Source: Schmidtea nova (taxonomy: Eukaryota). From it: 64,000 nucleotides of DNA. The stretch covers positions 175,398,001-175,462,000 of the forward strand of contig CM097883.1 in the NCBI GenBank assembly GCA_044892505.1. Direction: 5' to 3'. Below, one piece after another: positions 23,776 to 62,600 of this stretch. The notes under the pieces are model-generated. The model saw only the letters and a list, made by a program, of their open reading frames with translations, was not told the DNA's origin and did not search any database. Numbering within the stretch: the first letter of the stretch is position 1; each line of letters begins with the position of its first letter. The translations under genes were made by a program, and so were the position numbers.

Positions 23776-24220
23776 CTTTTTATTTTTGTTATTGTCGGCA
23801 ATAATGCCTTTAAAATAATAATAATAAAAAGTCAAAAATTGTATTTTAAAAGAAAATCGATTCGGAATAAAAAAATTACTAAGGAATAAAATAATATAGA
23901 AAATAGAAACGGAATTAACTATAGAAACGAATAGGAGTAAAGACGATCAAAGAAATCGCTAAAAATTAATTTATGAAAATAATAAAGAGACAAAAAAACA
24001 GAAGAAAACAAACAAAAGGAAACTAAAGAATTAATTGAAGAAAGTAATCTTTAAGAAAAGTTTGAAAATATATTACCACAAAAAACTGAAGGTAATAATA
24101 TCAAAGAATAGAAAATAAAATCAAAGACACTTTATATAATTAATTAATCAAATATTCGTGAGTAGTGTTGAATTTTATTATATTTTGTTAAATAAACGTT
24201 TTAATCAAGTTATTGTTGAG

Positions 24221-28559: not shown

Positions 28560-31310
28560 AACTACACAAGTTCAGCAAGACCTTCAGTTATTTTGTTTTA
28601 TAAAAAATTATTTGAAATCGTATTTTGCAAAATATGTAGATTCCAGAAAATTGGCGCAGCAAAAATTATGTTTTTGAATTCGTTGAATGTGTTGAAGTAA
28701 TAAAAAAAATTAATAAAATTCAAAATAAAATTATATTTATAACTAAATGAAGGAGAGATGTGAAAATCGAGTCAGGTATAGAATTGATAGTGTAAAGAAA
28801 TAAAAAGAGAACAAAGGCGTCAGAAAGTGTATCATTACGGGTGAAAAGCACAAAAATGTGAATTGTGAAAAATCGATAAAAGATTTAAATGTTCGAATTG
28901 AAATCTGGAAAATTGGTCATGGGGGAACAAGTAGCGAGGAATAACATGGTGATAACGGAATTTTCAGAAAGTGTCAAGAAGGGTGCGAAAAGGTACTTAG
29001 GAGTTAAAAACAAGAAAATGAAAGGAATTAATTAATTAATTAATTAACAAATAGAAAGAAATCCCGAGCTGGGTAAACAAAGAGAAAAGTAAACAGAAGG
29101 AAAATTTAGGCCCATTATCTGGTCACAATGATTAATGGGAGTAGGTCAAGAAAAGATAATATGTATAGAGAAGTCCAAGGCAGGCTATTAATTATTTTAT
29201 TTGGTCGGACCATTCCGGATGACAGCCGAGGCAGAGATGTGGAGCTGAATATCGGAACTGAGATTGGCTCAGCAAAACCCATTTGTCATCCAGATTTAGA
29301 AGAGTATAAAAGGAAGGGGAAAATCAGAACAAATTGGCAGTTTGCCTCAGCTAGGGACACGACGGAATTGAACTTAGAAAAGAGGAAAGGTAGAAAATAG
29401 GAAGTTAGGGAAAAAGAAAAGATAGAATCAGGAGATATTGAGGAAAACGAAAAGAGAATTAAATCGGAAGCGAATCTAATAAAATAAAGTAAAGAGGTGA
29501 ATCAAAGGAAGCTATTGACTAAAAAGGTGAATATTATTATAACTAATTGACAAAGAATCAATACCGAGCGGAGGATCGGTCAGACTCATAAAGACTTAGT
29601 TATTGATTATTTTGGGTTGAACGATATATTGTGTGATTCAATATACGTTAGGTAGTTTATTGTTTTGTTATTTACGATTAAAGGGACACGAGGAGTCAGA
29701 GAGTACCAACTCGAATATTAAAACCCAACAAATGTATCAATCACGTTTTCCAACAAGAAACTTTTAATGAAATAAGAATGGCACAATTTCATTGTTTTAT
29801 AGTGGATGAAAGCACTGATGTTTCAGTTAACAAAATGTTAATAATTTATATAAAATACCGGTTTGAATTTAATTACAAAACTGTTTTTGCTGGCATAATA
29901 CAGTTAAATTCATGTGACGCAAAATCGATTGTGGAGTCTATAAAATGTTTTTATAAAAAACTTAATCTGGATATGCAAAAGATGGTAATGTTAACATCTG
30001 ATGGAGCTGCAGTAATGTTGGGAGCTTATAATGGAGTTCCAGCACTTTTACCGCGAGAAACTTGCCACTTGACAGCTCAGCACTGTGTTGCTCATAGAGA
30101 AGATTTGGGAATCGATGATGTCTGGAAGGGTATACTTCTTATATCTCAAGTAGAAACGTTATTGCGAACTGTTTTGTACCATGTTCCATCGTTCATCTGT
30201 TAAAAACATCATTTTGAAGAAATGGCAAATCTAATGGATTGTGAAGCTTTGATGTTCCGACCTCTTATTGAAATACGCTGGCTTTCTCGTCATTTTGAGA
30301 TTATTCCGCTTATTCGAAATTATGACGTCTTGGTAGAATATTTCAAAGAAAAAATTGATAATTCAAATTCTGTTGATCGAACCGCGAAATACTGCTTTGC
30401 AGCTTTAAAAAATAATGTTAATCGTGTAACCTTGATCGCATTAAATGATGTTTTCACAAAATTGACAAAGTTATCAAAATATTTACAAAAAAGTGTTTTA
30501 TCACCAATGGAAGAGCATCAATATTGTAAATCGATCACAAAATTAAGAAGTCAGTACCTTGGTGATATAGTTTATTGGAGTGAGGATGTGAAAAAAAATC
30601 TCGAAGATGAAGGTAATAATAATATGCAAAAATTGTCTGGGATAATTCTATTTATTGAGAAATTATGCCACAATTTGGATAAAAGATTTCCTGATAGTGA
30701 CATGGACCTTTGGAATGCTTTTGATCAAAACGGCATTGTCAATACATCAGATTTTAATTATGGTGATGAAAATTTAAAAAAAAATAATATTGAAATATGA
30801 AGATCTCATCCCAAATATGAATAATAAAATAATAATGGAAGAGTATAAAGATTTAAAATATTTATTTACGGAAAAATTCAAAAATAATGGTCGTAATTTC
30901 AATGATCTACTTCAATTGGTTCTTCGTGAAGACTGTTTTCAAAATATAAAATATTTGTTTGATATTTGTGGAACCTTTCAAGCGTCGAGTGCTGATTGTG
31001 AAAGAGGTTTAAGAATGATGAATTTGATTAAAACAAAATTTAGAAATAGATTGGACGCTAATCATTTGAGTAACTTAATAAGAATAAAATCACACTTAGT
31101 TTCGGAAAATATTATTGATCTGGATAAAGTATACCATTACTGGAAGCGCAATAAAGACAGACGAGAAAAAAATAATCATGAACTTATATAAAAATAAATT
31201 ATGATTTTTCAAATAAAAAGAATTCCTAATTGCTTAATTTTTATTTAATTTTTTAATCGTGGCGCAATATTTTTTTTCTGCTCAGCTAAAAAAAATTAGA
31301 GGGAGCGTTG
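28560..31310 (+). mobile_element. hAT-B (DUF4371/ZNF862-like) transposon, frameshifted transposase
   Basis: VDESTD, SDGAAVMLG, HCVAHR, RWLS, SSADCERG...KTKFRNRL in ORFs 29778-31191; right TIR TTAGAGGGAGCGTTG ending 31310; left TIR not found. Confidence 0.88.
28690..29730 (+). mobile_element. Solo LTR (1041 bp) with AATG target-site duplication
   Basis: TGTTG...CAACA termini; AATG at 28686-28689 and 29731-29734; removing it restores the hAT-B frame (EFVECINHVFQQETFNEIRMAQF); TATAAAAG ~29305 and AATAAA ~29480. Confidence 0.85.
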
Positions 31311-36614: not shown

Positions 36615-36751
36615 NNNNNNNNNNNNNNNNNNNNNNNNNNNNNNNNNNNNNNNNNNNNNNNNNNNNNNNNNNNNNNNNNNNNNNNNNNNNNNNNNNNNNN
36701 NNNNNNNNNNNNNNNNNNNNNNNNNNNNNNNNNNNNNNNNNNNNNNNNNNN
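36615..36751. other. Assembly gap (137 N)
   Basis: Run of N. Confidence 1.
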
Positions 36752-46879: not shown

Positions 46880-47093
46880 ATAGTATTGTATTTATATTTA
46901 TTTATATCAAATTATATGACTCTTATAACGACATGAAAATTCGGAACTAATGATATAATCGAAAATGTTCATTTATCTCGTAATTCCCTTTCGCTCAATG
47001 ACCATCGTCTTTACCTCGCCGTGAAAGAAATCGCAAAGAAGTCGAAAAAATTATAAGCTCGTAAATAGCAACTCAATGAGTAATAGAAACGTC

Positions 47094-48091
47094 TGTTCGG
47101 TTCGTATCAGTGGTTTACGACGAACACAAAAAAAAATATATATATTTGATTTGATTATCGGACTCCAAACGATAATCCGCTTATATAATTATAAATAAAA
47201 TATATGTTTTAGGTTGGGTGTAAAGAAAACAAAACCTATTCTTTTTAATAAGATTTATTGCGATTTATGTATAACAATGTACAATATATTAAAATAAAAT
47301 AGCTGCAAAGCAAAAGTTAGAAAATCGGTTATTCAAACCGTCCTCAGAGTTTAAGAACGAAAGCTGGACCTAAAAGGCTCAACAGCTCCGACTAAATGAA
47401 AGGACAAAAGATGAGGGCTTTCCCGGTAGTTTAATCGCGATAGTGACAACCCAGAAATGGTTGTCACTGTGACCTAATAATTTCCCTTCTAATAATTTAT
47501 TATTTAACGAATTTACTGAAGGGGAAAAATAGTAATATAACTATTTCCCCGTGATCGATTTATAGAATTAAAGCAAACTAGAAAATTTACCAGCTAATAA
47601 AGATTATTCCAATTTCGGGAAATTATCACAAATGAAATTCAAGCTAAACTTCTCGTAATACTTCTGCCGTAAAAATTAATTTCTCCAATTCACAAATCTG
47701 TAAAACTTAGATTCTAAAATTCACTTCTGTCCAATTTATGTTTTGTAATTAGTTTAAATAGTAAAGTACTGCCTACACGGCCACGCACTAAAAGTTTACT
47801 ATTATTTTTAGTAATTCTTATTTACTATTTTTAATCTAAATTTATTATTATTATTACTATAATTAGTGTATATCTATTTAGAGCAGTTATTAATTACTAT
47901 ATTTATTTCTTTTCTATTTATAGTAATTATTTGTTACTAAAATTACTAATTAAGTATTTAATTATTACTATAATTATTATCTATCTATTTATAGTAATTC
48001 TTAATTGCTATTTATATTTATTTATTTATTTATAATATTTAATTACAAATTTATACAAAAACCCGAGATCCCTTGATCTCGAACCCTAACA
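47094..48091 (-). repeat. 3' LTR (998 bp)
   Basis: By eye identical to 60903-61903 except for a 1-nt shorter A run and one fewer TA unit. Confidence 0.97.
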
Positions 48092-48103
48092 TGTCTTCCC
48101 CCT
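48092..48103 (-). promoter_or_regulatory. Polypurine tract
   Basis: Minus strand AGGGGGAAGACA abutting the TGTT of the 3' LTR. Confidence 0.85.
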
Positions 48104-48396
48104 AACAAGATTTTCGTCCCGAAAATTAAAGCGGAAAAGGCAAGAAGGTTACGCAGCCAAAAATTAAAGAAAATAACAACACATACATATATACATAGAA
48201 TGCACTTGGCCAATAAAATAAAACAAAAATGAGTCTCATAAAACACATAATACATAAGTAATGTTAATCACAATCGATATCAAATAATAACTGTCTGTAA
48301 GCGTTGGATTGTTGATCGCATAGCCGAAATGCTAATTGTTTGATTGATAGTTGTCATAGCTTATAGCTAGACCTTGGATTGAACGTAGCAGAAATG

Positions 48397-50433
48397 CTAG
48401 TTATCCTTTGCGAATAGGTTTTGAGCTGCTCTCTTGCGAATATGCGCTTGCTCGTTCTTGATGCGATCTTCCACTATATCTGGTCTATAACTGACCACTA
48501 ATGTTTCGCGTGTTTCGACTTCCTTATATACCAAAGACGAAATCACGTATGATTTTCCGTTGGCCTCCAATACGCCATAGTAAGGGAAGTTTGAAACTGA
48601 TGATTGGTGTACCGGTTTCCCGTCGTATTCTTTTATCCGAGGTACCCAATTTCTCTCTGGTCGCTGCCAAAAACTAGGGTCTTCATTGTCCAAATCCTGG
48701 GGTGTCTTTGCTGAATTTCCTGTTCCAACGAAATCCCCTTCTCTTATAATAATAGGTTCGCCCTTAACCTCAGGAATCTGTTCCATATCGGGTGGAACGA
48801 ATGCTGTTTCGATTAAATCTTTGTCTTCCGTCGAGAGGAGATTTGGTACTTTCTTCTTGATCTTTAGATCTTGTAACCTTACAACAGGTTCTTGACTTTT
48901 CGTTGGGGGTGACTTTTCTACTGAAGTCAATTTTTTAAAAGTCTTAGTAACTTTTTCCAAGAGCTTGTTCTCTTTCTTTGGTGGATTTTCTGGCACGATC
49001 TTTGTAATTGTACGGCTGTCTCCGTGTAAAGTTAAACGCATCTCTGTTTGCTCCTCACCCTCGCTTTCGCAGGTGGCGTAATCGTCTTCATCAGCTAAGG
49101 ATATAGCTGGAGGGGATAGTGATTCTTCCTCAACTATCTTTTGCAATTTGGTTGATAATGGTTGTTCCTGGGGTAAGCTCTCAATAGCTTTCCTTTTACT
49201 CGTTTCTTGTGGCTGTATTGTATGAACCATTTTGACTTCTGATGTAATTGTCCCACTACGATTACCTGGGGTAATGTCATCTACCCAAACTTCTCTCAGT
49301 TTAAGGTAAATATTACGTGTCGTTTCCACGTCATTTTCCGTTTTCAGATCTGAACGGTTTAGTTCTTCCTTTTCGAGAATTGACTTTGATAAATACGCGA
49401 GTCGATAATGTCCGTTACATTTCTTTAGTTCTCTCGCTTCCAGGCATTTTGCTGCTCCTAGTTCCCTAATGCCCAAAACTCGTTGAGGGTGTAACTGGAC
49501 TGCTTCCAAGAAATCGTTGACTTGGAGACCTATTAGAATTTTCCCGTCACATAATTTTCTAATACGGTCTGCACAATCCTCTCCATCAAATTGTCCAATG
49601 ATTTCTTTTTCGGTCATACCATGCGCGTGCGATTGGTAATGTTTGACCTGGTTTCTGGGTGTAACCACCGTGTTTAATATTAAATCACCACAGTAGTTTG
49701 CTACCGAAACAGCCACCAAAGCTGGCTTTAAATAATCTCGCAAAGTTGCGTAATGCGCTGCAACAAAAATTGACAATCTATCTTCTTGATTGGGGTGCAG
49801 ATTCATCCGAACAAAGGATTTGAATGATTTGAGATCGTTCTCATTCACATTATAGGTCCAGGCAGGCTCATTTTTCCACAATGATTGCACTGCCTTGCTG
49901 GGTTCCAAAATCTCTAATACCACAATAGTATTATATCCGTCACATTGGATGGAGATATTCTTTTCTCTGCCATCTCCGTTACTAATTTCTAGAGTTGATT
50001 CTGGTTGAAGTAGGATGGGTCCTGTGGCTCCTGCCATGAAGATTGTAAAGGGTTTATTGATCGCGTGAATCAGGAGATGGTGAGTAAATGTTGATCTGTT
50101 AAATTCCGCCATGTGTTCAGTCAACCGGGTGTTCTCACGGCTGGTGATTGTGACTATGCACATTTGTCTCTTAGGTGATCCAAGAAACTTAAAATTGTTC
50201 GGGATGCCGGTGCAGTGCCCGTAATACCAATAGCGACGACCTTTCCGTGCCTCTGCGGATATCGCTTTTTCGATGTTTCGATAAATCAGTTTTTCCTTCT
50301 GTATTGTTTGCACATCGATAGTGCTGTAACGCTGCTTGTATTGTGACACTTGATGCTTCATATCTGAAAGAAAAATAATTAACGTTAATATCAGATATAC
50401 TGATATGCCAATATTGGCTAAAAAGAAATGCAT
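48397..50433 (-). CDS. ORF3 accessory protein (probable start ATG 50361, 654 aa): degenerate DEDDh exonuclease plus other domains
   Basis: ALVAVSVANYCGDLILNTVVTP...HGM...GKILIG...L..L...IL...ENDVETTRNIY follows the REX4/ISG20-type pattern; TTTTTCTTTCAG acceptor 2 nt before ATG 50361. Confidence 0.85.
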   Translation of the reverse strand: MHFFLANIGISVYLILTLIIFLSDMKHQVSQYKQRYSTIDVQTIQKEKLIYRNIEKAISAEARKGRRYWYYGHCTGIPNNFKFLGSPKRQMCIVTITSRENTRLTEHMAEFNRSTFTHHLLIHAINKPFTIFMAGATGPILLQPESTLEISNGDGREKNISIQCDGYNTIVVLEILEPSKAVQSLWKNEPAWTYNVNENDLKSFKSFVRMNLHPNQEDRLSIFVAAHYATLRDYLKPALVAVSVANYCGDLILNTVVTPRNQVKHYQSHAHGMTEKEIIGQFDGEDCADRIRKLCDGKILIGLQVNDFLEAVQLHPQRVLGIRELGAAKCLEARELKKCNGHYRLAYLSKSILEKEELNRSDLKTENDVETTRNIYLKLREVWVDDITPGNRSGTITSEVKMVHTIQPQETSKRKAIESLPQEQPLSTKLQKIVEEESLSPPAISLADEDDYATCESEGEEQTEMRLTLHGDSRTITKIVPENPPKKENKLLEKVTKTFKKLTSVEKSPPTKSQEPVVRLQDLKIKKKVPNLLSTEDKDLIETAFVPPDMEQIPEVKGEPIIIREGDFVGTGNSAKTPQDLDNEDPSFWQRPERNWVPRIKEYDGKPVHQSSVSNFPYYGVLEANGKSYVISSLVYKEVETRETLVVSYRPDIVEDRIKNEQAHIRKRAAQNLFAKDN

Positions 50434-50547
50434 AAATCTCGATTTACGGGATCTACTTATGCTGTAAGTTAATGCTACTCGGAGCTCAACAAGATTATAG
50501 ATTTTAATATATATATAAATACAAATATGCGATTTTATCTGTAATTG

Positions 50548-53500
50548 TCATAATCTCGTCATCATAATCCCATCAACCGACTCAATAGCCTGATTGAAGA
50601 ATAATTTCATCCAAACTCCCATTGCTATCAATGTAGTGATCATAGCTAATACTGCTGACGTAATAATCCATACCCCAATGGGTAATTTTCCCAAGTGAGT
50701 AATGGGGTTTACTTCATTAATTCCACACTGACAACTTTTAATATAGCTTTCTGTTGATACCGTTGGTTTTACCATTTTCAATCCTTTCAATCTCTGCCAT
50801 ATTGCAGGATGAATGACGTAACTTTCTTTCCGTATCAAGGATGTAACTGATTTCGTTGTCGTCGATGATTGAGGTAATTTCAAAGAGATTACTTCATAAA
50901 ATACCTCATTCCATTCATCGACTCCGGGCTTTTGTTTATTATTCATATAAGTGATATGAGCTTCCCACTCCACTGAGCTGTTCCACTTGAGATTTTGTTT
51001 CTCAATATCTTCGTTTAGCCACAATTCTTGTACTATTTCCTTGTCGGAGTGGATTTCTATCTTTACTCCATCCACTCCTTGTTTTGGTTGACTGAAGGTA
51101 ATCATACCTTGTTGGATATTTATCCTAACTTTCCTTTTGAAATCTGCTGTCTTCAGCTTCCATTGTGACTTGGAAAAATCTGACCATCGTCCAAACATAA
51201 AATGTTGAACAAGTATATCTAATAAATATTCCTTTTCTGCTCGTAAGTCCTTTATGACTTTCACTCTTGTGTTTGAATCCAATGTAAAATGGAAACAACG
51301 TCGTTCACAAAACGAGAACTTGAATTTGGTATCATTTTCAGCTAATGATATTATCCTAAATTCCTGGAAAGATCTTCTGAATGCGAGATCTTGGATTTGT
51401 ACCGCTGTTGGAACAAATGTTTTTACACATGATATGAGGCAACTTATTATTACCAAAAACGTAACTGATTTTGGCACGCCTCTTGATCGTAATGGATATC
51501 GGTCTGAGACTGTTTCTGACCCTTTATTCTCCTTTTTCTTAATCGAATCTTTCTCCGTGACCGCAACCTTCTTGCATCTGTTAGCATGTACCATTATTGG
51601 TTCAGCTTTTCTATTTGCTACTAATTGCAAGATTAAATTCGTGTCTGTGGTTCTCAAAACCTCATACGGTCCTTTGAAGTTTCTCATTAATTTAGGTGAT
51701 AAGCCCTTTTTATTATAATGGCTTTCCAACATCACCTTGTCTCCAACTAACATGCCATGTCCTTTGGCTTTCTTATCATGATAATCTTTCGACGCTTCCT
51801 GACTGAATTTTATACTAAGACCTGCTTTTGTCCATGCTTCTTGCATTCTTTCTCTCATTTCCATGAGATAATCCTCTTGGTCTAAATACTGCGTTGCTTT
51901 TGGGAAAAACAACAAGTCTATAGGCATTTTACTTTGCCTTAAATACATGAGATAGAACGGCGTTTGTCCCGTACCCTCATGAACAGCATTTCTGTATGCG
52001 AATAAGCATGATGGAATATGTATATCCCAATCCGTTTGCCCTGAATTTACGTATGATGCTAGCATATTTGCGAGCGTTCCGTTAAATCTCTCTACCAATC
52101 CGTCTGTTTGTGGATGATACGGAGAGGTATTCAATTTTAAAATGTCGAAATAATCATTTATTCCTTTTAACAGATTACTCATGAAATCTGCTCCTCTATC
52201 TGTTAGTAGTTTTGTAGGTACTCCATACCTAAAAACAATTTGCTCTACGAAAATCCTGGCTATCGTATCTGCCTTGTGATTCGGTATCGGATAAGCCTCC
52301 GGCCATTTTGTCAGGTAATCGCAAAATACCAATATGTATTTGTTACCACTATTTGATTCTTTGAATGGCCCTAAAACATCCATTGCCGTCATTTCCATCG
52401 GTGTGGATGGTACTGGCATTGGTTTCATTGGTACATGAGGTTTCTTCCCCGTATTTCTTCTGGTGATACAGATCTTACATGTCTGACACCATTCCTGTAC
52501 GTCTTGTTTGATTGTCGGCCAGAAAGATTTCTGCTTCAACCTTGACAATGTTTTCCTGGAAGACAAATGCCCTCCCAGTGCTCCATCATGATATTGTAAC
52601 ATCAAAGCTTCGCGATATTTCTTAGGGACCATTATGACATTATCCCTTACATCCACATATTTGACTAATCCTTCTTCTAAGATAAATTTGTCTCGATTTT
52701 TCTCCCAATATTTATTAAATTCCGTCGGTATGAACTTTGCTTCTAAAGCCTGTCTGATTTGGTTTATCTCTTCATCCGATTGTTGTGCTGCCATTAAATC
52801 CGCGAGTCTGTTTGCTTCTCTTGTAAGTGCGAAGATTGTTCCTTCTAATCTTCCTTCTTTGACATCTTCTGCTTCATCACCCTGGTCCATTCGAGAAAAT
52901 GCATCTGCATTCCCATTTTGATGTCCTTTTCGGTAATGTATTTCGATGTCGTACGGCTGCAAGATTAATGCCCATCTAACCAATTTTGATGTATCCATAG
53001 TATGCTTTGTTAACCACTGTAATGGTCTATGATCCGTATACACAATGATCTTTCGACCCCATAAATATGTCCTGAATTGGTGTATAGCATACACAATTGC
53101 TAATGCTTCTAATTCGATAACTGCGTAATTCTTTTCATGTGGTTTTAATCCTCTGCTAGCATACGCTATGGCATATTCGTCTCCTAGGTCATCTCTTTGA
53201 CCTAACACAGCACCAATACCCCGAGTGCTGGCGTCTGTCATGACCAAAAATTGTTTCTCAAAATCTGGGAACCGTAATATAGGAGGTTCCACGAGCATCC
53301 TCTTTAGCATATCAAATGCTTCCTGTTGCTCTTTTCCCCATACAAATTTGACATTTTTGCCCTCTAATTGTGTTAAAGGAAATGATATTGCTGAAAAGTT
53401 CCTGATGAACTTCCTGTAATATCCCACTAAGCCCAGAAACCCTTTAATATGTTTGACTGTCTTTGGCTCTGGAAAATTCTTTGCTTTCTCAACATTTGCT

Positions 53501-55068
53501 GGATCTGGTTTTACTCCATCCTTCGAGATAATGTGACCGACATAGACTACCTCTGATTCGGCCCATTTACATTTCGATGGTTTTACCTTAAGATTTGCAT
53601 TAATTAACCTTTTGAATACGTCCTCTAAATGTTCTAAATGTTTTTCCAAATCTGGAGAAAATACTATGATATCATCTATGTATACCATTGCATGATGAAC
53701 ATCCATTAACATTAGATTCATGGCTCTTTGAAACGTTGCCGGCGCTCCTGTGAGACCAAATGGCATTACTGTATATTCGAAGTGTCCAAGGCTTGTAGAA
53801 AAAGCCGTAATTGGTATTGTCTCCTCTTTTAACTTGATTTGGTAAAATCCCTTCTGAGCATCCATCACTGAGAAATATTTTGAATTTCTCCTGCGTCCGT
53901 AAATGTAATCCAGTAATGGTAATGGGTGACTATCCTTGCAAGTTGCTTCGTTTACCATTCGATAGTCGTTGCATAGTCGTACCGTTCCATCCTTTTTGGC
54001 CACCACTATCATTGGTGACTGGTATGGTGATTTACTATGCCTGATGATGTTATGTTTTAACATCAGTTTTACCTGCTTATCGACAGGTTCTTCCAAGCTA
54101 AACGGAATTCGATACGGTCTCAGTTTTATTGGTTTCGTATTGTTAAGAACAATTTCATGTTCCAACAAATTCGTCTTTCCCAAATCATATTCGTGCTTGG
54201 CGAATACCTGATCATATTTTCTTAATAACATGTTGACTTGGATATTCTCTCTTCGTGAAAGAGCTTTACTATTTGCCGTTGGCGCATCATAGTACTCGAT
54301 GTCTGGTTCTCTATTCTCTGCCTTCACTGTCAGGACAGATCCCCCAATCGGTAATTGATCCGACTTTGATACTCTCCCTACTCTTGTATCTGGATACAAT
54401 TTTAATGGTTTTATATCTAAATTGGCTACCCGAATTGGTATTCTGCCATTTTCAACTTTACCAACGCTATGCGTAATTGGTAGATTATATTTTGCTGAGA
54501 ACCTTTCATCTGGTTCGAATACTACTTCTCCTTCCCACTGTTTGCTAGTAGACACGAAACATACTGTTTCTGCTCTGGGTGGTATTATCATCGTATGGTC
54601 GATGAAAACTGTATCATCATTATAAACTTTTCTTTTCTTACCGATTGATCTAACTAACAATCCGGTAGCACAGTCAAATACAACTCCTTTTAATCTTCTT
54701 AAAAGATCCATTTCTAGTAGACATTCTACTGGACAAGTTCTCATGACTATAATATCATGACGAAATTCTTGGTCACATAGCTTGATGTTGCAAGCTAGAG
54801 TACCGATAATATTCAAGGATGTGCCTGTAGCACCTGTTAGCGAAACTCTTGAGGTTTCCATTGATTCCAATTCTTTTTGATTTAATAGTGTTGCCTCTAT
54901 GATAGTGCCGTCTGCTCCTGAATCTATCACTGCATTAACTGTGTGTCTGTTTATTTTTATCTTTATCATGGGTTTCTTATCCAAGTTTACCCCATTTGCC
55001 ATCAAAATAGTAGCATGCGTTATCCCGATGGTATTTGCTCTGAATTTCTCTGCTTCATCTGCTATCAC
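50548..55068 (-). CDS. pol: Pol polyprotein: aspartic protease, RT, RNase H, integrase, plus C-terminal type I membrane protein
   Basis: IDSGA; RLCNDYR, MPFGLTGAPATFQR, YIDD; TDAS...ELEALAI; HHCC, DVLGP, TDRG, DGLVERFNGTL, GPY; frame opens at GTG right after a TGA, first ATG at 55002. Confidence 0.97.
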   Translation of the reverse strand: MIADEAEKFRANTIGITHATILMANGVNLDKKPMIKIKINRHTVNAVIDSGADGTIIEATLLNQKELESMETSRVSLTGATGTSLNIIGTLACNIKLCDQEFRHDIIVMRTCPVECLLEMDLLRRLKGVVFDCATGLLVRSIGKKRKVYNDDTVFIDHTMIIPPRAETVCFVSTSKQWEGEVVFEPDERFSAKYNLPITHSVGKVENGRIPIRVANLDIKPLKLYPDTRVGRVSKSDQLPIGGSVLTVKAENREPDIEYYDAPTANSKALSRRENIQVNMLLRKYDQVFAKHEYDLGKTNLLEHEIVLNNTKPIKLRPYRIPFSLEEPVDKQVKLMLKHNIIRHSKSPYQSPMIVVAKKDGTVRLCNDYRMVNEATCKDSHPLPLLDYIYGRRRNSKYFSVMDAQKGFYQIKLKEETIPITAFSTSLGHFEYTVMPFGLTGAPATFQRAMNLMLMDVHHAMVYIDDIIVFSPDLEKHLEHLEDVFKRLINANLKVKPSKCKWAESEVVYVGHIISKDGVKPDPANVEKAKNFPEPKTVKHIKGFLGLVGYYRKFIRNFSAISFPLTQLEGKNVKFVWGKEQQEAFDMLKRMLVEPPILRFPDFEKQFLVMTDASTRGIGAVLGQRDDLGDEYAIAYASRGLKPHEKNYAVIELEALAIVYAIHQFRTYLWGRKIIVYTDHRPLQWLTKHTMDTSKLVRWALILQPYDIEIHYRKGHQNGNADAFSRMDQGDEAEDVKEGRLEGTIFALTREANRLADLMAAQQSDEEINQIRQALEAKFIPTEFNKYWEKNRDKFILEEGLVKYVDVRDNVIMVPKKYREALMLQYHDGALGGHLSSRKTLSRLKQKSFWPTIKQDVQEWCQTCKICITRRNTGKKPHVPMKPMPVPSTPMEMTAMDVLGPFKESNSGNKYILVFCDYLTKWPEAYPIPNHKADTIARIFVEQIVFRYGVPTKLLTDRGADFMSNLLKGINDYFDILKLNTSPYHPQTDGLVERFNGTLANMLASYVNSGQTDWDIHIPSCLFAYRNAVHEGTGQTPFYLMYLRQSKMPIDLLFFPKATQYLDQEDYLMEMRERMQEAWTKAGLSIKFSQEASKDYHDKKAKGHGMLVGDKVMLESHYNKKGLSPKLMRNFKGPYEVLRTTDTNLILQLVANRKAEPIMVHANRCKKVAVTEKDSIKKKENKGSETVSDRYPLRSRGVPKSVTFLVIISCLISCVKTFVPTAVQIQDLAFRRSFQEFRIISLAENDTKFKFSFCERRCFHFTLDSNTRVKVIKDLRAEKEYLLDILVQHFMFGRWSDFSKSQWKLKTADFKRKVRINIQQGMITFSQPKQGVDGVKIEIHSDKEIVQELWLNEDIEKQNLKWNSSVEWEAHITYMNNKQKPGVDEWNEVFYEVISLKLPQSSTTTKSVTSLIRKESYVIHPAIWQRLKGLKMVKPTVSTESYIKSCQCGINEVNPITHLGKLPIGVWIITSAVLAMITTLIAMGVWMKLFFNQAIESVDGIMMTRL

Positions 55069-55414
55069 TCAATTTTGGATTATATTCCTTGAATTTAGCT
55101 TTTATTGCTTCTAACGACTCGATAGGATACAGTTTCCCTTCATTTTCTAACGATAATGATATGCTTTTACCTGTTTCTCGAGCATCTTTGTCGGGAATTT
55201 GTTGATGTTTAGAAATGTACATTTTGTTTCTTGGTATGGTTAAAGCATAACTTGGCTTGCCTTCTCCTGATGTCTTTTGAAACTCTGGCGATTCCCCCTT
55301 TGGTGCTGTTGGTAAGCTTCTAAGATATGGCAATTGCATATATCTTGGGCTTCTTTTCAATCTAGGCGATGTTGTATTTAATTGCAAATTTCTGGTCTGC
55401 ACTATCGTATTCAT
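55055..55414 (-). CDS. 119-aa linker ORF overlapping the end of ORF1 and the start of pol
   Basis: Overlaps ORF1 by 53 nt and pol by 14 nt; preceded by a TTTCAG acceptor; no recognisable domain. Confidence 0.45.
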   Translation of the reverse strand: MNTIVQTRNLQLNTTSPRLKRSPRYMQLPYLRSLPTAPKGESPEFQKTSGEGKPSYALTIPRNKMYISKHQQIPDKDARETGKSISLSLENEGKLYPIESLEAIKAKFKEYNPKLSDSR

Positions 55415-58400
55415 CTTCTGAAATCATACTTTTGTCGAAAATCTGTTTTGTCGCTTCGTAAGGTGGTTGATAATCTCGATATTTCATTTTCCTTAATTGA
55501 TGATTCGGTTTTTTATTGTAGTTTCTTTTTCGACTTCTACTTTGCCTCTGAACTGTATTAAGAGAGTCTCCATTACCTCCTCCTTCCGAATTGTTATCGT
55601 CCCGATAACTTGTATTACCCTCCATTTCGATTCCAATAATCTCGTGTTTTACCAAGCTTCTCTGTTTGATTGTCTTTATTTCTTTACGATGATGTTTAAA
55701 CAATGCAAATTCCGCACACATAGGACACAATCCTAGTATCAACTTCCAAGACCATCCACCGATTTTGAATATGCTGTATGTGGAAATTAATTGTGTTATT
55801 ATTAACTTTAGAATTACGAATATTGCATATATTCCGGAGCAGCCTGCCACGAATATACCAAAATTGGTAAACCTTCCCCATATTTTCATCATCACATTTT
55901 TAGCTGCTTCTTTATAATGATCTGGACCGAATAATAAATTGTAATCTGGTCTCATTTCGTTTGCTTGGTAAATTGTTCTTATGATTTCAGTGATACCTCT
56001 TTCTCTTACTTGAGGGAATAGCAATGTCTGTCTTGCCTCCTCAATGTCTGCTGGAGTGTAAATTCCTCCTTGTGATAATTCATCGAGTGATTTAAATTCC
56101 ATGTTTTCCTCGAGTTTCGTGACTTCTAATGTTTCCACCTTTCTATTAGATGGTTTTCTGTCAGGTAATGAGATCCATCTATCATTTACCTTGTATAACG
56201 GTGATATTGCTGGATTGCAAATTGAAGGTTGAGGCTTTTGTTTTTCATCCAAAAGTCTCCTCGTTACTGGCATTACAAATCGTATTTTGTTTTGATATGA
56301 CACTGGTAATTCTAGAGTACATTCGTTATACCGTGTTAATTGTACCTCTATGGGTTGACATTGATAGCTGTATATAGCTTCCCCCATAATTCTGCCAAAC
56401 ATTCCATCTTCTAGCAACATAGGTGTCACTAGATCCGGATTCACGATTGATATCGCTAATCGATTTCGAACTATTTCGCGATTTAGTTTGCAATCATTGA
56501 GTATTACTTCCTGATACATTTCCTGCATTTGTCCTTGCAGATCATGATATAAATAATCTATTTTATTATTTATATAGTTCGTGATTTTGATATCCTGGCT
56601 GTGAATATTCTTGGCTTTTTGGATAAATGTTTTTGACAAATATAATCCTTTATAGTTGGTCTCGTACACCACTTTTCCGCATTTTGTCTTCTTATCTTTT
56701 CTGACAAATCTGATTGCATCTTTCTTATCTTCTGATACTAATACTAGAGGTGTGATTTCCTCACTAATATCCTCTTTTTGCTGTTTGTTGATCCTTTTCA
56801 ACGTCTTTTCTTTATCCCAAATTCTTTCTCTTTTGGGTAAATCTCGATACTTTGTCCCGTTCAACTTATGGAAATTAATTTTCTTTAGTAATGACAATTC
56901 GCAATGGTCTAGTATTTGATCGTATAATAATGTAATGACCCCTGTTCTGCAGCTTCCAAATTTCGCAAGGCACTGAGGGTGTGCCATTAATCTTCCTGAT
57001 AATACATCGAAAGTTCCTTCGTATTCTCTTAATTCGATTGAATAGTCCTCGATATCTACGACAAAACTTACCAACTCCGATCCGCGAGTTTTCTTTCTTC
57101 CCGTACAGGTACCATCTGATCCGATTGATCCTCCTCGTGTAATGGTTACTCCCAGTGTTTTTCCTACTTCCGCGGCGATGGTTACCTCGTTATCGATTCT
57201 TAAAGTACCTTTTCGAAAGGCGTCTAGACAATCCTCTGGTAATATGTTGACAGGTCTAGGTATTAGAGTGGCTGATAGAAAAGCTGTATAGCTGTGTGAA
57301 CCACAATAATATTCAAATGTCGCTCTTTGGACTCTACATTCTCTTATCTTAGTTCTGAAGAATTCACTTTCTTGGTAGACATAGTATTCGACCTTTTCTC
57401 CTGTTTGGACTTTCTCTGGATATGCCTCTTTGCACTCAATTGCATCCACGAGCGAATATATCCGAGCTAACTTTGGATCACTGCAATCAAACGCTGTCAT
57501 TGTGTTTGTCTGTTTCATTATCCCCATCATTACTAAAAACATTAATATCATATTCGTCATATTCCCCATTCCTCCATTTCCGAGGTGGTTGTTATTCATA
57601 ACCTCTTCCACAAATTCATATCGTGGTTTATGTTTCTCCTCTTCCCAGAAATTATTTTCACTCATCCACGTTCCGAGATAATGCTCCGTTATCTCCGTGA
57701 TCTGGTCTATTTCTCGATTAATAAGTTTCTTCTCATTGCCTGCGCGGGCTAAGGCATCTTGAATCAACATAGATAATGCTGTCACTATTTTTCCTTTAGA
57801 TAACCCATCTTGTATGAGTGTCTCTAACATACTCTGTATCTCGTTTTGAGGTACCATTTTAGGTAATCTCCTCATCGTCTTCGCGATTGACTGTGTCACT
57901 TTATCCACTTGAATTCCTTTAATCCGAGTGATCTGCCATTCCGGCTTTAATATTCCTATGATCTGTTTTAATCTCTTCCATGTCAGAGATTTTTCTGGTA
58001 TATGTACTCCCTCGTCTCTCATATCAACATCCCTGGCTATTCCTGACAGGGTTTTCATCTGAACCTGTTTAATGGTTTCTTGGTTTAATTGCTCCGTTGG
58101 GGGAGGTTTCATTTGATCTTTCCTAGGCCTTCCTCGCCTATCTTTCTTTGTCTGCCATGCTGGCCTGATAGTTTCTACCGCCTGAGAAGTTGAAGCTCCC
58201 ACGTTAGTTTCCTCATTATTGAGTCTGATTTCTTCTTCTCCGTGATTATCGGCATCGATATCTACATTAAATGGTTGTGTTTCGACGTTACCAGTGACCA
58301 TTTCATCTGGTAACCGTAATGCTGACCATTGAGATTCAGGTGGCTCTACGGGAATGATTGCTACCGTTGTAGTTTCAAATGGTAGACATCCCACATCTAC

Positions 58401-60821
58401 TAAATATTCATCATCATCCACTTGTCCTCCATGAATCATAATCAAGAATATACCGGTAGTCTGCCCAGTATCTATTAAATCTTTTCTCAACGTTATCACT
58501 TTGCTAAAACAACGATATAATCTCGTCATGGGTTCTTTTCCCGCTATTCGAATGTCTAAAGTTATCATGCCTTGTCGGTGTGCTTGATGACGTATTGCTG
58601 TTCCATTTTTCCTCATTAACATTTTTATTTCTGTTTGAAAAGAACTAGTTTCTTTTACTACAGGTAGTAATATAGGAATTATACTCTCCAATGATTCTAC
58701 TGGTATGCGCAATACCAACATCCAGTCTAATATTTCCTTGATTGTTTCTCCATCCCTCGGAGATTTCTGCAACTCTATCTTTAGACGTTGCTCTATTTGT
58801 TGGACTTCCTCCAACTGTGCAATTTCCATTTGTGTGAGTAGAAACACACTGTCTTGATCCACTACTGGGACCGATATTCCTGTCAGTTTTGTTGTGAGTT
58901 TCGTTACCCTTCCTGGTAATACACCATTTTGTAGTAGTGTTTCCCCAACTACTAACTTTTCTCCATATAGATAAAAATCATATCTATTATGTTTCAATTT
59001 CATCATTGTATCTGACAACTTATCTGTTCGACATCTTACATTCATGTCGATGTTAAACTCCTGCTCCTGAGGAAGTTTTATGTTTAAATGCGAATCCTGA
59101 AGATCCCATTCATGCTCCATTGCTGTTCCTATCTTTCGTAGGATTCTGTGTATGTCGCTATGATACTTTGGATCATCTTCGACCTGAGATATTAACTGTA
59201 ATATCTTTCCAATTTCACTATTCTTGATATCACCTTGTGATAATTTCTCTAATTCTCTAGTCAGTCTCTGCTGATACTCATATCTGGAATCCACCAGTTT
59301 TAAACATTTTGCTAGGGTATCTGACCCTTTCTTGGCCTTTGTTTCCTTGAACAAAGCCTGGTCGAACTCGCTCAGTATGGTACTCATACTGGGTTCGTCA
59401 TCATTATCAGAATTTGTTTCTGATTCTATTACCTCATGATTCTCGCTGCTGGAATCCATGGGTTCACTATTTCCTTGCTCGTCTGTGTAAGCATCATAAT
59501 TTTTCTCAGCTGAAATCATCAAAACTGTTCCTTGCCCAACTGTGTGAGCATCATCGCTTTCCTCAATGGGATTCATTATAACTGTTCCTCGCCCATCCAT
59601 GTGAGCATGATTTTTCTCAGCTGAAATCATAAAAACTGTCTCTTGCCCAACTGTGTGAGTCTCATTCTTTTCCTCTATTGTATTCATCAAAACTGTTCCT
59701 CGCTCATCTGTGTGAGCATGATTTTTCTCAGCTGAAATCATAAAAACTGTATCATCTCGATCCATTAGCCGTGCTAATCGATTTTTCTCCTCCTGGATTT
59801 CCATTTCCAGTTGTTGCAAATACGTCAATTCTTTATCGTGATTGACCATGAACGTAGTTTTTGGCTTGCTGATATTACCACCATTGGTAGTCCTATTATT
59901 CGTATTATTACTCTGATTTTGAGGACACGACCTCAGGATATGCCCGAATTTTCCACATCCGTGGCATTTTATCTTTCCTGATGAATTTACATCATCCCTT
60001 TTTATATTAAAATTCCCATTCGTTGGGAGATTCCTAACTCTACAAACGGAAGCAACATGCCCTCTGCGTTTGCATTTATCACACTGCAAGTTCGTGACTC
60101 TACAGTTCTCAACACTATGATTATTCATACCACATTTAGTACACTGAATACCCCTACGAGTATCAGCTACCTTCTTACTGTGGCAATCTTTTGATATATG
60201 CCCCTTCTTATGGCAGTTAAAACATTCAATTGCTGGCTTCTCATTATTTACCATAAATGAGGTAGCCTTTTCTAAGCTGCTTTCGATTACGACAGCTTTT
60301 CTTGTTAATTCCCAAAAATCATCTCCCGTGTGGAGAATCAATGCATTTCTCATTACATTTGTGAATCCAGCTAATAATTGGTCTTTAACCATAGCTTTAG
60401 TTGCATCATTCCAGGTAGTTCTGAGCCCAAATGCTCTTTCGGCTAATAACAATAATTGATAGGAAAATTCTCCTACATGCTCATTGGCATTCTGTTTTCT
60501 ATGGTAAAATTGTTGTCGGAAAATTCTGCTTGAATCTCCCGGTAATATTCTAGCCGTTAGTGATTCTCTCATCTTTTCCCATGTAGCTGGTTTATCTGCT
60601 GCTGGTAACGCCATAATATCATTGTAGTTTTCCCTTGCCATACCCTTAAGGTAAATTGGCAGTCTTTGTATCATTATTGCATCTGGATACCCATAGGCCT
60701 TTGCCATCTGATAATACTCTGACATAAACTCCGGAAATTCCCCTGGATCTCCGCTAAATGCCTTGACAGGTAAAGCGGGATATCTAGCAAAAACATTATT
60801 CTCTTCAGCCATGTCCTCCAC
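55362..60821 (-). CDS. gag: ORF1 (1819 aa): Gag capsid, 4 CCHC knuckles, spacer with UBL-like domains, chuvirus-type glycoprotein
   Basis: Capsid FSGD...Q..NEHVGEF; CX2CX4HX4C x4 at aa 200-299; internal hydrophobic signal aa ~1088-1108; AFDC, YCGSHS, GEAIYSYQC...ECTLELPV; TM at aa ~1651-1675. Confidence 0.95.
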   Translation of the reverse strand: MEDMAEENNVFARYPALPVKAFSGDPGEFPEFMSEYYQMAKAYGYPDAIMIQRLPIYLKGMARENYNDIMALPAADKPATWEKMRESLTARILPGDSSRIFRQQFYHRKQNANEHVGEFSYQLLLLAERAFGLRTTWNDATKAMVKDQLLAGFTNVMRNALILHTGDDFWELTRKAVVIESSLEKATSFMVNNEKPAIECFNCHKKGHISKDCHSKKVADTRRGIQCTKCGMNNHSVENCRVTNLQCDKCKRRGHVASVCRVRNLPTNGNFNIKRDDVNSSGKIKCHGCGKFGHILRSCPQNQSNNTNNRTTNGGNISKPKTTFMVNHDKELTYLQQLEMEIQEEKNRLARLMDRDDTVFMISAEKNHAHTDERGTVLMNTIEEKNETHTVGQETVFMISAEKNHAHMDGRGTVIMNPIEESDDAHTVGQGTVLMISAEKNYDAYTDEQGNSEPMDSSSENHEVIESETNSDNDDEPSMSTILSEFDQALFKETKAKKGSDTLAKCLKLVDSRYEYQQRLTRELEKLSQGDIKNSEIGKILQLISQVEDDPKYHSDIHRILRKIGTAMEHEWDLQDSHLNIKLPQEQEFNIDMNVRCRTDKLSDTMMKLKHNRYDFYLYGEKLVVGETLLQNGVLPGRVTKLTTKLTGISVPVVDQDSVFLLTQMEIAQLEEVQQIEQRLKIELQKSPRDGETIKEILDWMLVLRIPVESLESIIPILLPVVKETSSFQTEIKMLMRKNGTAIRHQAHRQGMITLDIRIAGKEPMTRLYRCFSKVITLRKDLIDTGQTTGIFLIMIHGGQVDDDEYLVDVGCLPFETTTVAIIPVEPPESQWSALRLPDEMVTGNVETQPFNVDIDADNHGEEEIRLNNEETNVGASTSQAVETIRPAWQTKKDRRGRPRKDQMKPPPTEQLNQETIKQVQMKTLSGIARDVDMRDEGVHIPEKSLTWKRLKQIIGILKPEWQITRIKGIQVDKVTQSIAKTMRRLPKMVPQNEIQSMLETLIQDGLSKGKIVTALSMLIQDALARAGNEKKLINREIDQITEITEHYLGTWMSENNFWEEEKHKPRYEFVEEVMNNNHLGNGGMGNMTNMILMFLVMMGIMKQTNTMTAFDCSDPKLARIYSLVDAIECKEAYPEKVQTGEKVEYYVYQESEFFRTKIRECRVQRATFEYYCGSHSYTAFLSATLIPRPVNILPEDCLDAFRKGTLRIDNEVTIAAEVGKTLGVTITRGGSIGSDGTCTGRKKTRGSELVSFVVDIEDYSIELREYEGTFDVLSGRLMAHPQCLAKFGSCRTGVITLLYDQILDHCELSLLKKINFHKLNGTKYRDLPKRERIWDKEKTLKRINKQQKEDISEEITPLVLVSEDKKDAIRFVRKDKKTKCGKVVYETNYKGLYLSKTFIQKAKNIHSQDIKITNYINNKIDYLYHDLQGQMQEMYQEVILNDCKLNREIVRNRLAISIVNPDLVTPMLLEDGMFGRIMGEAIYSYQCQPIEVQLTRYNECTLELPVSYQNKIRFVMPVTRRLLDEKQKPQPSICNPAISPLYKVNDRWISLPDRKPSNRKVETLEVTKLEENMEFKSLDELSQGGIYTPADIEEARQTLLFPQVRERGITEIIRTIYQANEMRPDYNLLFGPDHYKEAAKNVMMKIWGRFTNFGIFVAGCSGIYAIFVILKLIITQLISTYSIFKIGGWSWKLILGLCPMCAEFALFKHHRKEIKTIKQRSLVKHEIIGIEMEGNTSYRDDNNSEGGGNGDSLNTVQRQSRSRKRNYNKKPNHQLRKMKYRDYQPPYEATKQIFDKSMISEDEYDSADQKFAIKYNIA
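59440..59760 (-). repeat. In-frame 111-bp (37-aa) tandem repeat in ORF1, ~2.5 copies
   Basis: CTCAGCTGAAATCAT at 59505, 59616, 59727; protein TVFMISAEKNHAH..RG / TV(L/I)MN.IEE...HTVGQ. Confidence 0.95.
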
Positions 60822-60881
60822 AACTTTTGTCTTTTTAGGAGCTATTTTGTATATAACAATATGTTCACTGATAATAATTGT

Positions 60882-60899
60882 ATCACGTCGGGCTCACCA
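60882..60899 (-). promoter_or_regulatory. Primer-binding site, tRNA-Trp-like
   Basis: Minus strand TGGTGAGCCCGACGTGAT, 3 nt from the 5' LTR; differs at one position from the tRNA-Trp PBS TGGTGACCCCGACGTGAT. Confidence 0.85.
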
Positions 60900-60902
60900 A
60901 AA

Positions 60903-61903
60903 TGTTCGGTTCGTATCAGTGGTTTACGACGAACACAAAAAAAAAATATATATATATTTGATTTGATTATCGGACTCCAAACGATAATCCGCTTATATAA
61001 TTATAAATAAAATATATGTTTTAGGTTGGGTGTAAAGAAAACAAAACCTATTCTTTTTAATAAGATTTATTGCGATTTATGTATAACAATGTACAATATA
61101 TTAAAATAAAATAGCTGCAAAGCAAAAGTTAGAAAATCGGTTATTCAAACCGTCCTCAGAGTTTAAGAACGAAAGCTGGACCTAAAAGGCTCAACAGCTC
61201 CGACTAAATGAAAGGACAAAAGATGAGGGCTTTCCCGGTAGTTTAATCGCGATAGTGACAACCCAGAAATGGTTGTCACTGTGACCTAATAATTTCCCTT
61301 CTAATAATTTATTATTTAACGAATTTACTGAAGGGGAAAAATAGTAATATAACTATTTCCCCGTGATCGATTTATAGAATTAAAGCAAACTAGAAAATTT
61401 ACCAGCTAATAAAGATTATTCCAATTTCGGGAAATTATCACAAATGAAATTCAAGCTAAACTTCTCGTAATACTTCTGCCGTAAAAATTAATTTCTCCAA
61501 TTCACAAATCTGTAAAACTTAGATTCTAAAATTCACTTCTGTCCAATTTATGTTTTGTAATTAGTTTAAATAGTAAAGTACTGCCTACACGGCCACGCAC
61601 TAAAAGTTTACTATTATTTTTAGTAATTCTTATTTACTATTTTTAATCTAAATTTATTATTATTATTACTATAATTAGTGTATATCTATTTAGAGCAGTT
61701 ATTAATTACTATATTTATTTCTTTTCTATTTATAGTAATTATTTGTTACTAAAATTACTAATTAAGTATTTAATTATTACTATAATTATTATCTATCTAT
61801 TTATAGTAATTCTTAATTGCTATTTATATTTATTTATTTATTTATAATATTTAATTACAAATTTATACAAAAACCCGAGATCCCTTGATCTCGAACCCTA
61901 ACA
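60903..61903 (-). repeat. 5' LTR (1001 bp)
   Basis: See 3' LTR. Confidence 0.97.
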
Positions 61904-62362
61904 CGTCTACATTGTATTATCCTTTCAGATCATACTCGATATTATACAATTGAACTTTACTTCAAGTTGCAAACATTATTAACTGAAACTTCTGAAAATT
62001 GTATCTAAAATTTTAGTATTCGAAACTCTCAAAAAACATGTCTTGAAACTTTATATATAAAAATTTTTGTTATTATCAAAAAATTCGCATATGATCGAAT
62101 CTAATTTTTGGAAAAATAAAAATTTATTTTTATAATAATATATTATGTAAAAATTTAGATTAAATTATTAGAATATAAAAATTTAAAATCGTAAATTTTA
62201 TTACTATATTAGAATATAAAAAAATCTTTTAAATCAAAATCTTTATTATTATATATATTTTAAAGAATTTCAAATTTAGTTTTATGTAGAAAAATTATAT
62301 TATAATTATAATTTTATTTTTAAAATTATTACCTTTCACAACATCACGAAATAATAATACTT

Positions 62363-62600
62363 GCAAATCAATACATCCATATCATTCAATAACGCCATCC
62401 ATATCCAATACCTCATACAAAAAGTTATTCATCTACCAATACACACACTACATCGTTTCACTCATAAACATTCATCGACATCATACATCCAGCAAATCAA
62501 TACATCCATATGATTCAATAACGCCATCCACATCCAATACCTCATACAAAAAATTATTCATCTACCAATACATACACACTTCATCGTTTCATTCATTTAC
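62363..62600. repeat. 129-bp tandem repeat, 2 copies
   Basis: gcaaatcaatacatccatat...aacgccatcca...cctcatacaaaaa...catcgtttca at 62363 and 62492. Confidence 0.9.

Follow-up and report, generated by a model that had tools for sequence, protein, structure and literature searches.

A recent, apparently coding-competent Ty3/gypsy element of gag-env-pol order and its lineage of module-rich relatives

Described gag-env-pol elements and the element in the window

Long terminal repeat (LTR) retroelements of the order GAG-ENV-POL, with a class III-type Env, have been described from Nematoda, Bryozoa and Platyhelminthes and are polyphyletic in the Pol tree (eLife 2026, PMC13524379), and nematode elements with env and pol 'flipped' are those of Sacco et al. 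2022, as cited there. Chuviridae-like glycoproteins also occur in LTR elements of arthropod genomes, both gypsy elements and the BEL/Pao elements ('Anakin') of mosquitoes (Dezordi et al. 2020, PMC7642597; PMC13524379), and the bdelloid rotifer LTR elements Vesta and Juno carry after pol a third open reading frame (ORF3) for a DEDDy exonuclease, for which an auxiliary role has been proposed (PMC5408684). Here we analyse an element of 14,810 bp on the minus strand of a 64,000-nt stretch of contig CM097883.1 (assembly GCA_044892505.1, positions 175,398,001 to 175,462,000), the whole of which is called the window below. On the sequence hallmarks of its LTRs, 4-bp target-site duplication, primer-binding site (PBS), polypurine tract (PPT) and order of Pol domains, it is a Ty3/gypsy (Metaviridae-like) LTR retrotransposon. 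We believe that it is best explained as a recent, apparently coding-competent member of the GAG-ENV-POL class, from a lineage unusually rich in captured modules and with the chained-frame expression proposed below, and we hold this explanation to be fairly probable.

The two LTRs are identical save for a single 3-nt indel (the one mismatch that BLAST reports between the LTR stretches falls in 5 nt outside the LTR proper), the ORFs are free of stops, and the DSGA motif of the protease (PR) and the YIDD motif of the reverse transcriptase (RT) are present, so that the insertion is apparently very young and, as far as its sequence goes, coding-competent. This agrees with the initial annotation, which had described an intact virus-like gypsy element; its bounds (47094-61903) are exact, and LTRs, duplication, PBS, PPT and uninterrupted ORFs are all confirmed (Table 1). 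The same annotation had suggested a search for copies of the same architecture, and parts of the layout were indeed recovered elsewhere, as detailed below. It had also known of no described element with this layout. Since the GAG-ENV-POL order has been published (Sacco et al. 2022, as cited in PMC13524379; PMC13524379), that statement does not hold for gene order.

The comparison with the closest described systems can be made point by point. With the GAG-ENV-POL elements the window element shares the LTRs, a Ty3/gypsy-type Pol and an env between gag and pol (Sacco et al. 2022, as cited; PMC13524379), and it resembles them also by an Env of negative-strand RNA virus-like glycoprotein origin and by the occurrence of young intact copies (PMC13524379). 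For those elements, the accessible text of PMC13524379 describes no ubiquitin-like (Ubl) or Bcl-2-like domains, Pol-fused membrane protein, post-Pol exonuclease ORFs or serial +1 frames, and its main text, in the same accessible part, does not mention frameshift, splicing, exonuclease or accessory ORF. Like Anakin and the arthropod gypsy elements, the window element is an LTR retroelement with a captured Jingchuvirales/Mononegavirales-type glycoprotein; in contrast, their env lies downstream of pol, according to the initial annotation and to the general GAG-POL-ENV scheme (PMC13524379), Anakin belongs to another superfamily (BEL/Pao), and accessory modules such as those of the window element are not reported there. 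Our literature search, which left the paper of Sacco et al. and the supplements of PMC13524379 outside its scope, found no Ubl or Bcl-2-like module reported in a retroelement, and for elements of this kind no account of a membrane protein fused to Pol, of paired DEDDh paralogues or of +1 frames in series. What is already published, then, is the gene order, and what we found no description of in the searchable literature is the set of extra modules. The flipped nematode elements reportedly have a continuous gag-env-pro-pol ORF; if this is true, an in-frame Gag-Env fusion is itself not new.

Inside either LTR lie AT-rich tandem repeats, at 47842-48036 and 61654-61848, with three overlapping units of ~84 nt each, and numerous TATA-like and AATAAA-like strings; U3/R/U5 borders could not be drawn in the LTRs. 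A tRNA scan of the window found no tRNA gene, and the PBS is thus without a matching tRNA from the window. An Rfam scan of the window gave no matches, and the rest of the window held no further copy, solo LTR or fragment of the element.

Relatives, open frames and junctions

Searches with the element's own proteins yielded contigs from the ENA assembly ERZ25039515 and two JGI metagenomes. At least seven related loci (numbered here within L001 to L009), in three public assemblies, share parts of the layout at 21-50% protein identity, and env is placed between gag and pol in the window element and in L001, L002, L003, L008 and L009. L001 and L002 run in order through Gag, Ubl, glycoprotein (G), protease-like domains, Pol and ORF3, with identities to the window element of 21-31% in the Gag and ORF3 segments (ORF3 23-28%), 27-31% in Ubl, 37-41% in G and ~47% in Pol. 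In L003, Gag-Ubl-G occupies a single frame that is interrupted by one stop. In L008 and L009, Gag-Ubl is followed by a Bcl-2-like domain plus G and next by protease or ankyrin modules, with Pol downstream of these in L008. ORF3-type genes are present in L004 to L007, and in L005 and L006 Pol lies upstream and two such genes follow it. On this comparison of sequences, the element belongs to a lineage and is neither a one-off nor a chimera.

Several of the relatives carry additional domains. These are ankyrin repeats and aspartyl-protease domains of retroviral type, of which as many as three stand side by side and some match the DDI1-type family. They are located either in the interval from glycoprotein to Pol or downstream of the integrase (IN); in that interval the window element has only the 119-aa linker. 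At L009, an ORF3-type gene (154-1134) lies ~4 kb upstream of Gag, which suggests two related elements in tandem or nested. Three UniParc gene models look like element fragments fused to host exons. In P0005 and P0007 (UniParc UPI00060C8625 and UPI000603F177), the domain preceding G and part of G are joined either to a segment of a voltage-gated calcium channel or to an enzyme resembling Tam41, and these chimeric gene models are probably annotation artefacts in an animal genome.

Four frames (ORF1, linker, Pol and ORF3) together fill nearly all of the internal region of the window element, and none has an internal stop. With 7.3% of codons expected to be stops from the base composition of this strand, the chance of stop-free frames of such length is ~1e-61 for ORF1, 1e-50 for Pol and 1e-24 for ORF3, and the 122-codon linker frame, which spans the gap exactly, would be open with a chance of ~9e-5. 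The linker ORF had no detectable family and no detectable homologue. From ORF1 to Pol there are two frame changes, and from Pol to ORF3 a single stop codon. The window element, L001, L002, L008 and L009 together have ten ORF junctions ahead of Pol; every one of them is a +1 step, and nine of them overlap. In L001 and L002, ORF1 extends past the glycoprotein into the protease-like domains and reaches Pol by a single +1 step, as against two in the window; L008 has four serial steps and L009 two, so that multi-step chains do occur in the lineage. The uniform direction of the steps suggests serial programmed frameshifting. Programmed +1 ribosomal frameshifting is what sets the Gag:Pol ratio in Ty1 and Ty3, and the window element is like them an LTR retroelement in which the downstream frame is +1 to, and overlaps, the upstream frame; unlike Ty1 and Ty3, the lineage has up to four serial +1 steps, without a recognised shift site, and they are known here from sequence alone.

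The stop of Pol is TGA in both elements with ORF3 in the Pol frame (window and L001) and TAA in L002, L005 and L006, where ORF3 sits in another frame. In the window it occupies 50548-50550, from which 38 codons lead on to the ORF3 ATG at 50433, and it is followed by CAA TTA; in L001 the following codon is CGG. Both contexts resemble known leaky-stop contexts, which is a lead only, and ORF3 may be reached by readthrough of this TGA. Scans for 2A-like sites and for furin sites were negative.

Modules of ORF1, Pol and ORF3

The content proposed for ORF1 by the initial annotation, a fusogen made as part of Gag and preceded by two Ubl domains, is borne out: there are four CCHC knuckles, both Ubl domains are recognised at the level of fold, and the glycoprotein, of family PF24664, is fused in frame with Gag between gag and pol. 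Its second membrane protein made with Pol and its accessory ORF3, which is conserved in relatives, likewise stand, and so does the presence of host-like modules, which we identify in this section as tandem Ubl domains, an exonuclease fold of ISG20 type and, probably, a Bcl-2-like domain. The capsid-like part of Gag gave a weak Retrotrans_gag match (E=0.06). A YPxL-like motif near the Gag N-terminus (ORF1 aa 14-17, window 60771-60782), the only such motif found, has the position and form of an ALIX-type late-budding motif. In the acidic spacer that follows the knuckles, a tandem repeat of ~111 nt (~37 aa, DNA 59438-59716) is present in three copies of 60-100% identity, two of which have an exact 8-aa core in common.

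The Ubl unit was modelled by AF2 with an 18-row alignment of relatives, and pLDDT exceeded 90 over segment residues 105-270, which comprise the helix bundle and the beta-grasp of Ubl-B. In a Foldseek search of the unit against the PDB, the top matches were ISG15, poly-ubiquitin and ATG5 (E ~3e-6 to 3e-5, with modest whole-chain TM-scores), and in a viral structure library single domains matched virus-encoded ubiquitins (TM 0.81-0.83, 1.8 A). The architecture of ATG5 is itself Ubl, helix-rich domain, Ubl. At the level of modelled fold, these results support a Ubl, helix bundle, Ubl unit in ORF1, in which Ubl-B is the best-conserved non-enzymatic module among relatives. By sequence, the window segment gave no Pfam ubiquitin match, and that of the relative P0013 (E=0.0034) reached 17.5 bits for a cut-off of 25.4. 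A ubiquitin fold in a viral genome or polyprotein is known from pestivirus polyproteins and from giant-virus and baculovirus ubiquitins, which were among the structure-library matches; unlike those of such exogenous RNA and large DNA viruses, the Ubl domains of the window lack a diglycine for canonical cleavage or conjugation (it is found at the C-terminal end of neither), so that they would not be conjugatable modifiers of the canonical kind.

A disordered stretch separates the Ubl unit from the helical domain that precedes the glycoprotein (the pre-G domain), and a hydrophobic segment directly follows this domain. First searches disclosed a faint Bcl-2 signal. A first Bcl-2 profile (A3), dominated by the host calcium-channel portion of one chimeric model, was uninformative and therefore set aside. 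With a clean profile of the window, L008 and L009 domains (A7), the best 60 PDB matches were all Bcl-2 or Bcl-xL (E 0.007-0.02), which is consistent but weak, and with two relatives added (A8, five sequences) the PDB matches, still weak, had E values of 0.003-0.006. Individually, the three pre-G domains matched PF00452 at E=4.5e-5, 0.012 and 0.018. We consider the domain to be probably Bcl-2-like, as judged from these sequence matches, without taking the assignment as established. Herpes-, pox- and asfarviruses encode Bcl-2 homologues, which the window element would resemble in having a Bcl-2-fold module in a viral genome, the assignment here being only probable.

The glycoprotein module matched PF24664 (Monjiviricetes_fusion) at E=2e-90, with 304 bits against a cut-off of 27, and those of relatives scored 294 and 298 bits; there was also a faint match to the bornavirus G family. 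Leader, ectodomain and transmembrane segment (TM), the last followed by a 134-aa tail, form a type I layout. A word-index protein search with the glycoprotein alone returned nothing, which reflects the limits of the method and is not evidence of absence.

In Pol, Pfam placed RVP at residues 30-128, RVT_1 at 357-514, RT_RNaseH at 577-706, Integrase_H2C2 at 814-872 and rve at 889-986. This PR-RT-RNaseH-IN order extends to about residue 1190, and the remaining ~310 aa contain two hydrophobic segments. Pol ends in the same manner, with a hydrophobic segment, 200-400 aa and a strong TM, in the window, L001, L002, L005 and L006. On this pattern, the Pols of the lineage end in a signal-plus-anchor membrane module. 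A single-sequence AF2 model of the tail was uninformative (mean pLDDT 44) and was not used.

As for ORF3, its residues 238-385 matched human ISG20L2, a DEDDh exonuclease (PDB 7yw5, E=1.3e-5), and BLAST related it to the b paralogues of relatives with E values from 1e-14 to 3e-18. The relatives L004 to L007 have two tandem ORF3-type genes, of which the first (a-form) retains none of the five DEDDh residues and the second (b-form) all five, and the b-forms of L004-L006 pass Pfam RNase_T (PF00929; E=6e-8 to 1.5e-11, 33.9-45.6 bits for a cut-off of 24). The ORF3 of L001 has 0/5 of these residues. The window carries an inactive form only: its ORF3 has the fold of the DEDDh family but just one of five catalytic residues, and is not expected to be an active enzyme. 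A word-index protein search with ORF3 returned nothing, a limit of the method and not evidence of absence, and an exact look-up in public assemblies gave no record for ORF3 and likewise none for P0005. Like Vesta and Juno, the window element has a DEDD-superfamily 3'-5' exonuclease-type gene as an ORF after pol; unlike theirs, which is DEDDy (RNase D-like), it is of DEDDh type (RNase_T/ISG20-REXO-like), some relatives have an active-looking and an inactive paralogue, and in the window the inactive one is alone and bears a membrane anchor. The description of the rotifer elements discusses a link to inactive DEDD proteins binding RNA (PMC5408684).

The neighbourhood of the element consists of transposon remnants only. 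At 22894-23835 (-) there is the dimerisation domain of a hAT transposase (E=2e-16), at 29778-30203 (+) a transposase-associated piece of DUF4371 type, and at 1012-1731 (-) a weakly matching fragment of a type-B DNA polymerase (Polinton/Maverick-like). A direct repeat of ~102 nt (89% identity, copies 129 nt apart, 62347-62577) lies just outside the 5' end of the element, and positions 36615-36751 of the window are 137 consecutive N, from an assembly gap or from masking.

Table 1. Features of the window element, of its surroundings and of related loci (window coordinates unless a locus is named)
Feature	Position	Strand	Remarks
Whole LTR element	47094..61903	-	14,810 bp
5' LTR	60903..61903	-	1001 nt, TG..CA
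3' LTR	47094..48091	-	998 nt, TG..CA
Target-site duplication	47090-47093 and 61904-61907		4 bp, GACG on the element strand
PBS	60882..60899	-	starts TGG, 3 nt after 5' LTR
PPT	48092..48103	-	purine-rich, adjoins 3' LTR
ORF1	55362..60812	-	one frame, 1816 aa from first Met: Gag, linker, Ubl, helix bundle, Ubl, pre-G domain, glycoprotein
Gag	59922..60812	-	capsid-like N-part and four CCHC knuckles (ORF1 aa 200-299)
Spacer	59097..59834	-	acidic, low complexity, after zinc knuckles
Ubl-A	58839..59087	-	beta-grasp, lower confidence (pLDDT 64-82)
Four-helix bundle	58587..58832	-	between Ubl domains (pLDDT ~90)
Ubl-B	58350..58568	-	beta-grasp, high confidence (pLDDT >90)
Pre-G helical domain	57570..58082	-	probably Bcl-2-like (BH1-BH2 region)
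Glycoprotein module	55365..57569	-	PF24664 Monjiviricetes_fusion
Glycoprotein hydrophobic leader	57504-57569		ORF1 aa 1085-1106
Glycoprotein ectodomain	55869-57503
Glycoprotein TM	55767-55868		ORF1 aa 1652-1685
Linker ORF	55055..55414	-	119 aa, +1 to ORF1; overlap 59 nt with ORF1, 11 nt with Pol frame
Pol ORF	50548..55068	-	1506 codons, +1 relative to linker
PR	54685-54981		Pol ORF, DSGA motif
RT	53527-54000		Pol ORF, YIDD motif
RNase H	52951-53340		Pol ORF
IN	51499-52629		Pol ORF
Pol C-terminal membrane module	50551..51480	-
Pol-tail hydrophobic leader	51400-51480
Pol-tail middle part	50695-51399		~235 aa
Pol-tail TM	50596-50694		strong; then 15-aa tail
ORF3	48397..50433	-	678 aa, Pol frame, one TGA between
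ORF3 N-terminal hydrophobic anchor	50356-50433
ORF3 conserved N-domain	49744-50316
ORF3 ISG20/REXO-like DEDDh fold	49264-49734		catalytic residues 1/5
ORF3 C-terminal extension	48400-49263		~290 aa, unique
Other mobile-element remnants	22894-23835 (-), 29778-30203 (+), 1012-1731 (-)
Tandem ORF3-type genes	L004:49-3018; L005:6861-9920; L006:7268-10371; L007:2318-5421
Extra protease/ankyrin sites	L001 ORF1 (P0001 aa 1557-2065); L002 Pol tail; L008:11181-14961; L009:12585-14609

Expression, alternative explanations and meaning

Because the overlapping frames form a chain without a break, it seems that the full-length RNA is translated. According to the scheme that we propose, the genomic RNA would be translated as a chain of overlapping frames with ORF1 as the main product, and the Gag:Pol ratio would be determined by rarer +1 shifts, first to the linker frame and from there to that of Pol; ORF3 may be reached when the lone TGA at the end of Pol is read through. 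Leader and TM would thread the glycoprotein through the membrane of the endoplasmic reticulum and, given its place between the two, the threaded chain would have Gag and Pol on the cytosolic side and the ectodomain in the lumen, by analogy with certain enveloped RNA viruses and their polyproteins. Host signal peptidase and the protease of the element would then separate the pieces, the glycoprotein would let particles exit and enter cells, and a cut by signal peptidase after the leader would leave the Bcl-2-like domain with a C-terminal membrane anchor, as Bcl-2 proteins usually have. Together with the Ubl unit and the inactive exonuclease, this domain would serve as an accessory protein that interacts with host pathways (ubiquitin-like, cell-death and RNA-degradation), and that such modules counter host defence is speculation. 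In its boldest form the scheme would describe a 'complex' retrovirus-like invertebrate lineage, with one membrane-threaded polyprotein made through serial +1 shifts and a leaky stop and carrying host-pathway modules: a Bcl-2-like protein whose anchor doubles as envelope leader, an ISG15/ATG5-like double Ubl, a second surface protein made with Pol, and an exonuclease pair of which the inactive copy is an RNA-binding shield or decoy. We regard this extended form as doubtful.

A number of observations weigh against the explanation given at the outset. One junction, in L008, is a gap and not an overlap, and comparison of the ends of the upstream frames revealed no shared slippery or shift motif at the +1 junctions; judged from a single copy, the frame might have changed twice on the way from ORF1 to Pol by mutation and not by programmed shifting. 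The readthrough idea, a lead only, leans on two elements and on their stop contexts, and the expression scheme as a whole is read from nucleotide sequence. The topology is argued from hydrophobic segments, and a crude count of membrane spans is unreliable for its parity (it overlooks the glycoprotein leader itself). As to the modules, the PF00452 scores of the pre-G domains (window 16, L009 16.6 and L008 24.4 bits) are all under the cut-off of 31.4, and the AF2 model of this domain shows helices at low confidence (pLDDT 50-69). Sequence and profile searches of the glycoprotein against the PDB gave no match, its class III fold being putative, and the Pol tails compared among the lineage showed no detectable homology, being too divergent to align convincingly.

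It is also conceivable, if unlikely, that a separate mRNA, whether subgenomic, spliced or trans-spliced, serves for each of the glycoprotein with its pre-G domain, Pol and ORF3, the fusion and overlaps being by-products of tight packing. A Met is found near the start of each module (aa 1085 of ORF1 for the G leader, codon 23 of Pol just ahead of PR, and the ORF3 ATG), the Bcl-2-like-plus-G unit is an ORF separate from Gag-Ubl in L008 and L009, classical errantiviruses and retroviruses make Env from spliced RNA, and trans-splicing would be available if the host is a nematode or flatworm. However, ten of ten junctions in +1 and an open linker frame are unexpected under independent translation, and a scan with generic splice signals, perhaps not those of the host and for this reason a weak negative, detected neither a strong donor in the leader nor, in the 400 nt that precede each of the three module Mets, an acceptor rich in pyrimidines. 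Less probable still is that the copy is young but defective, with the linker a piece of ORF1 or Pol displaced by a frameshift mutation and no Pol made from this copy. The single +1 step to Pol in L001 and L002 against two in the window, the lack of a detectable homologue of the linker and the availability of only one copy to judge from would fit this idea, whereas the near-identity of the LTRs leaves little time for mutation, multi-step chains occur in L008 and L009, and no ORF contains an internal stop while the linker is open exactly across the gap (P ~9e-5).

That an RNA-virus glycoprotein gene or another element came to lie by accident inside an ordinary gypsy element, by chimeric assembly or nested insertion, is a notion we treat as effectively refuted. 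Glycoprotein-derived endogenous viral elements are common in invertebrate genomes (PMC10084718, PMC7642597) and the neighbourhood is rich in transposons, but misassembly is rejected because the layout recurs in relatives, with the same order in at least five independent, divergent loci of other assemblies; moreover, the glycoprotein is in frame with Gag, there are no internal LTRs or duplications around it, and other elements with this gene order have been published.

Of the living models for the origin of retroviruses from retrotransposons, envelope-carrying LTR elements come closest. The gag-env-pol order raises the question of how Gag, Env and Pol are made in the right amounts and on the correct side of the membrane, and the shared Gag-Env frame, the +1-chained frames and the membrane module that ends Pol are features of this lineage that bear on it. 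If the host-like modules are real, invertebrate retroelements, for which our literature search found no report of this kind, would, like large DNA viruses, collect cell-death, ubiquitin-like and RNA-decay genes.

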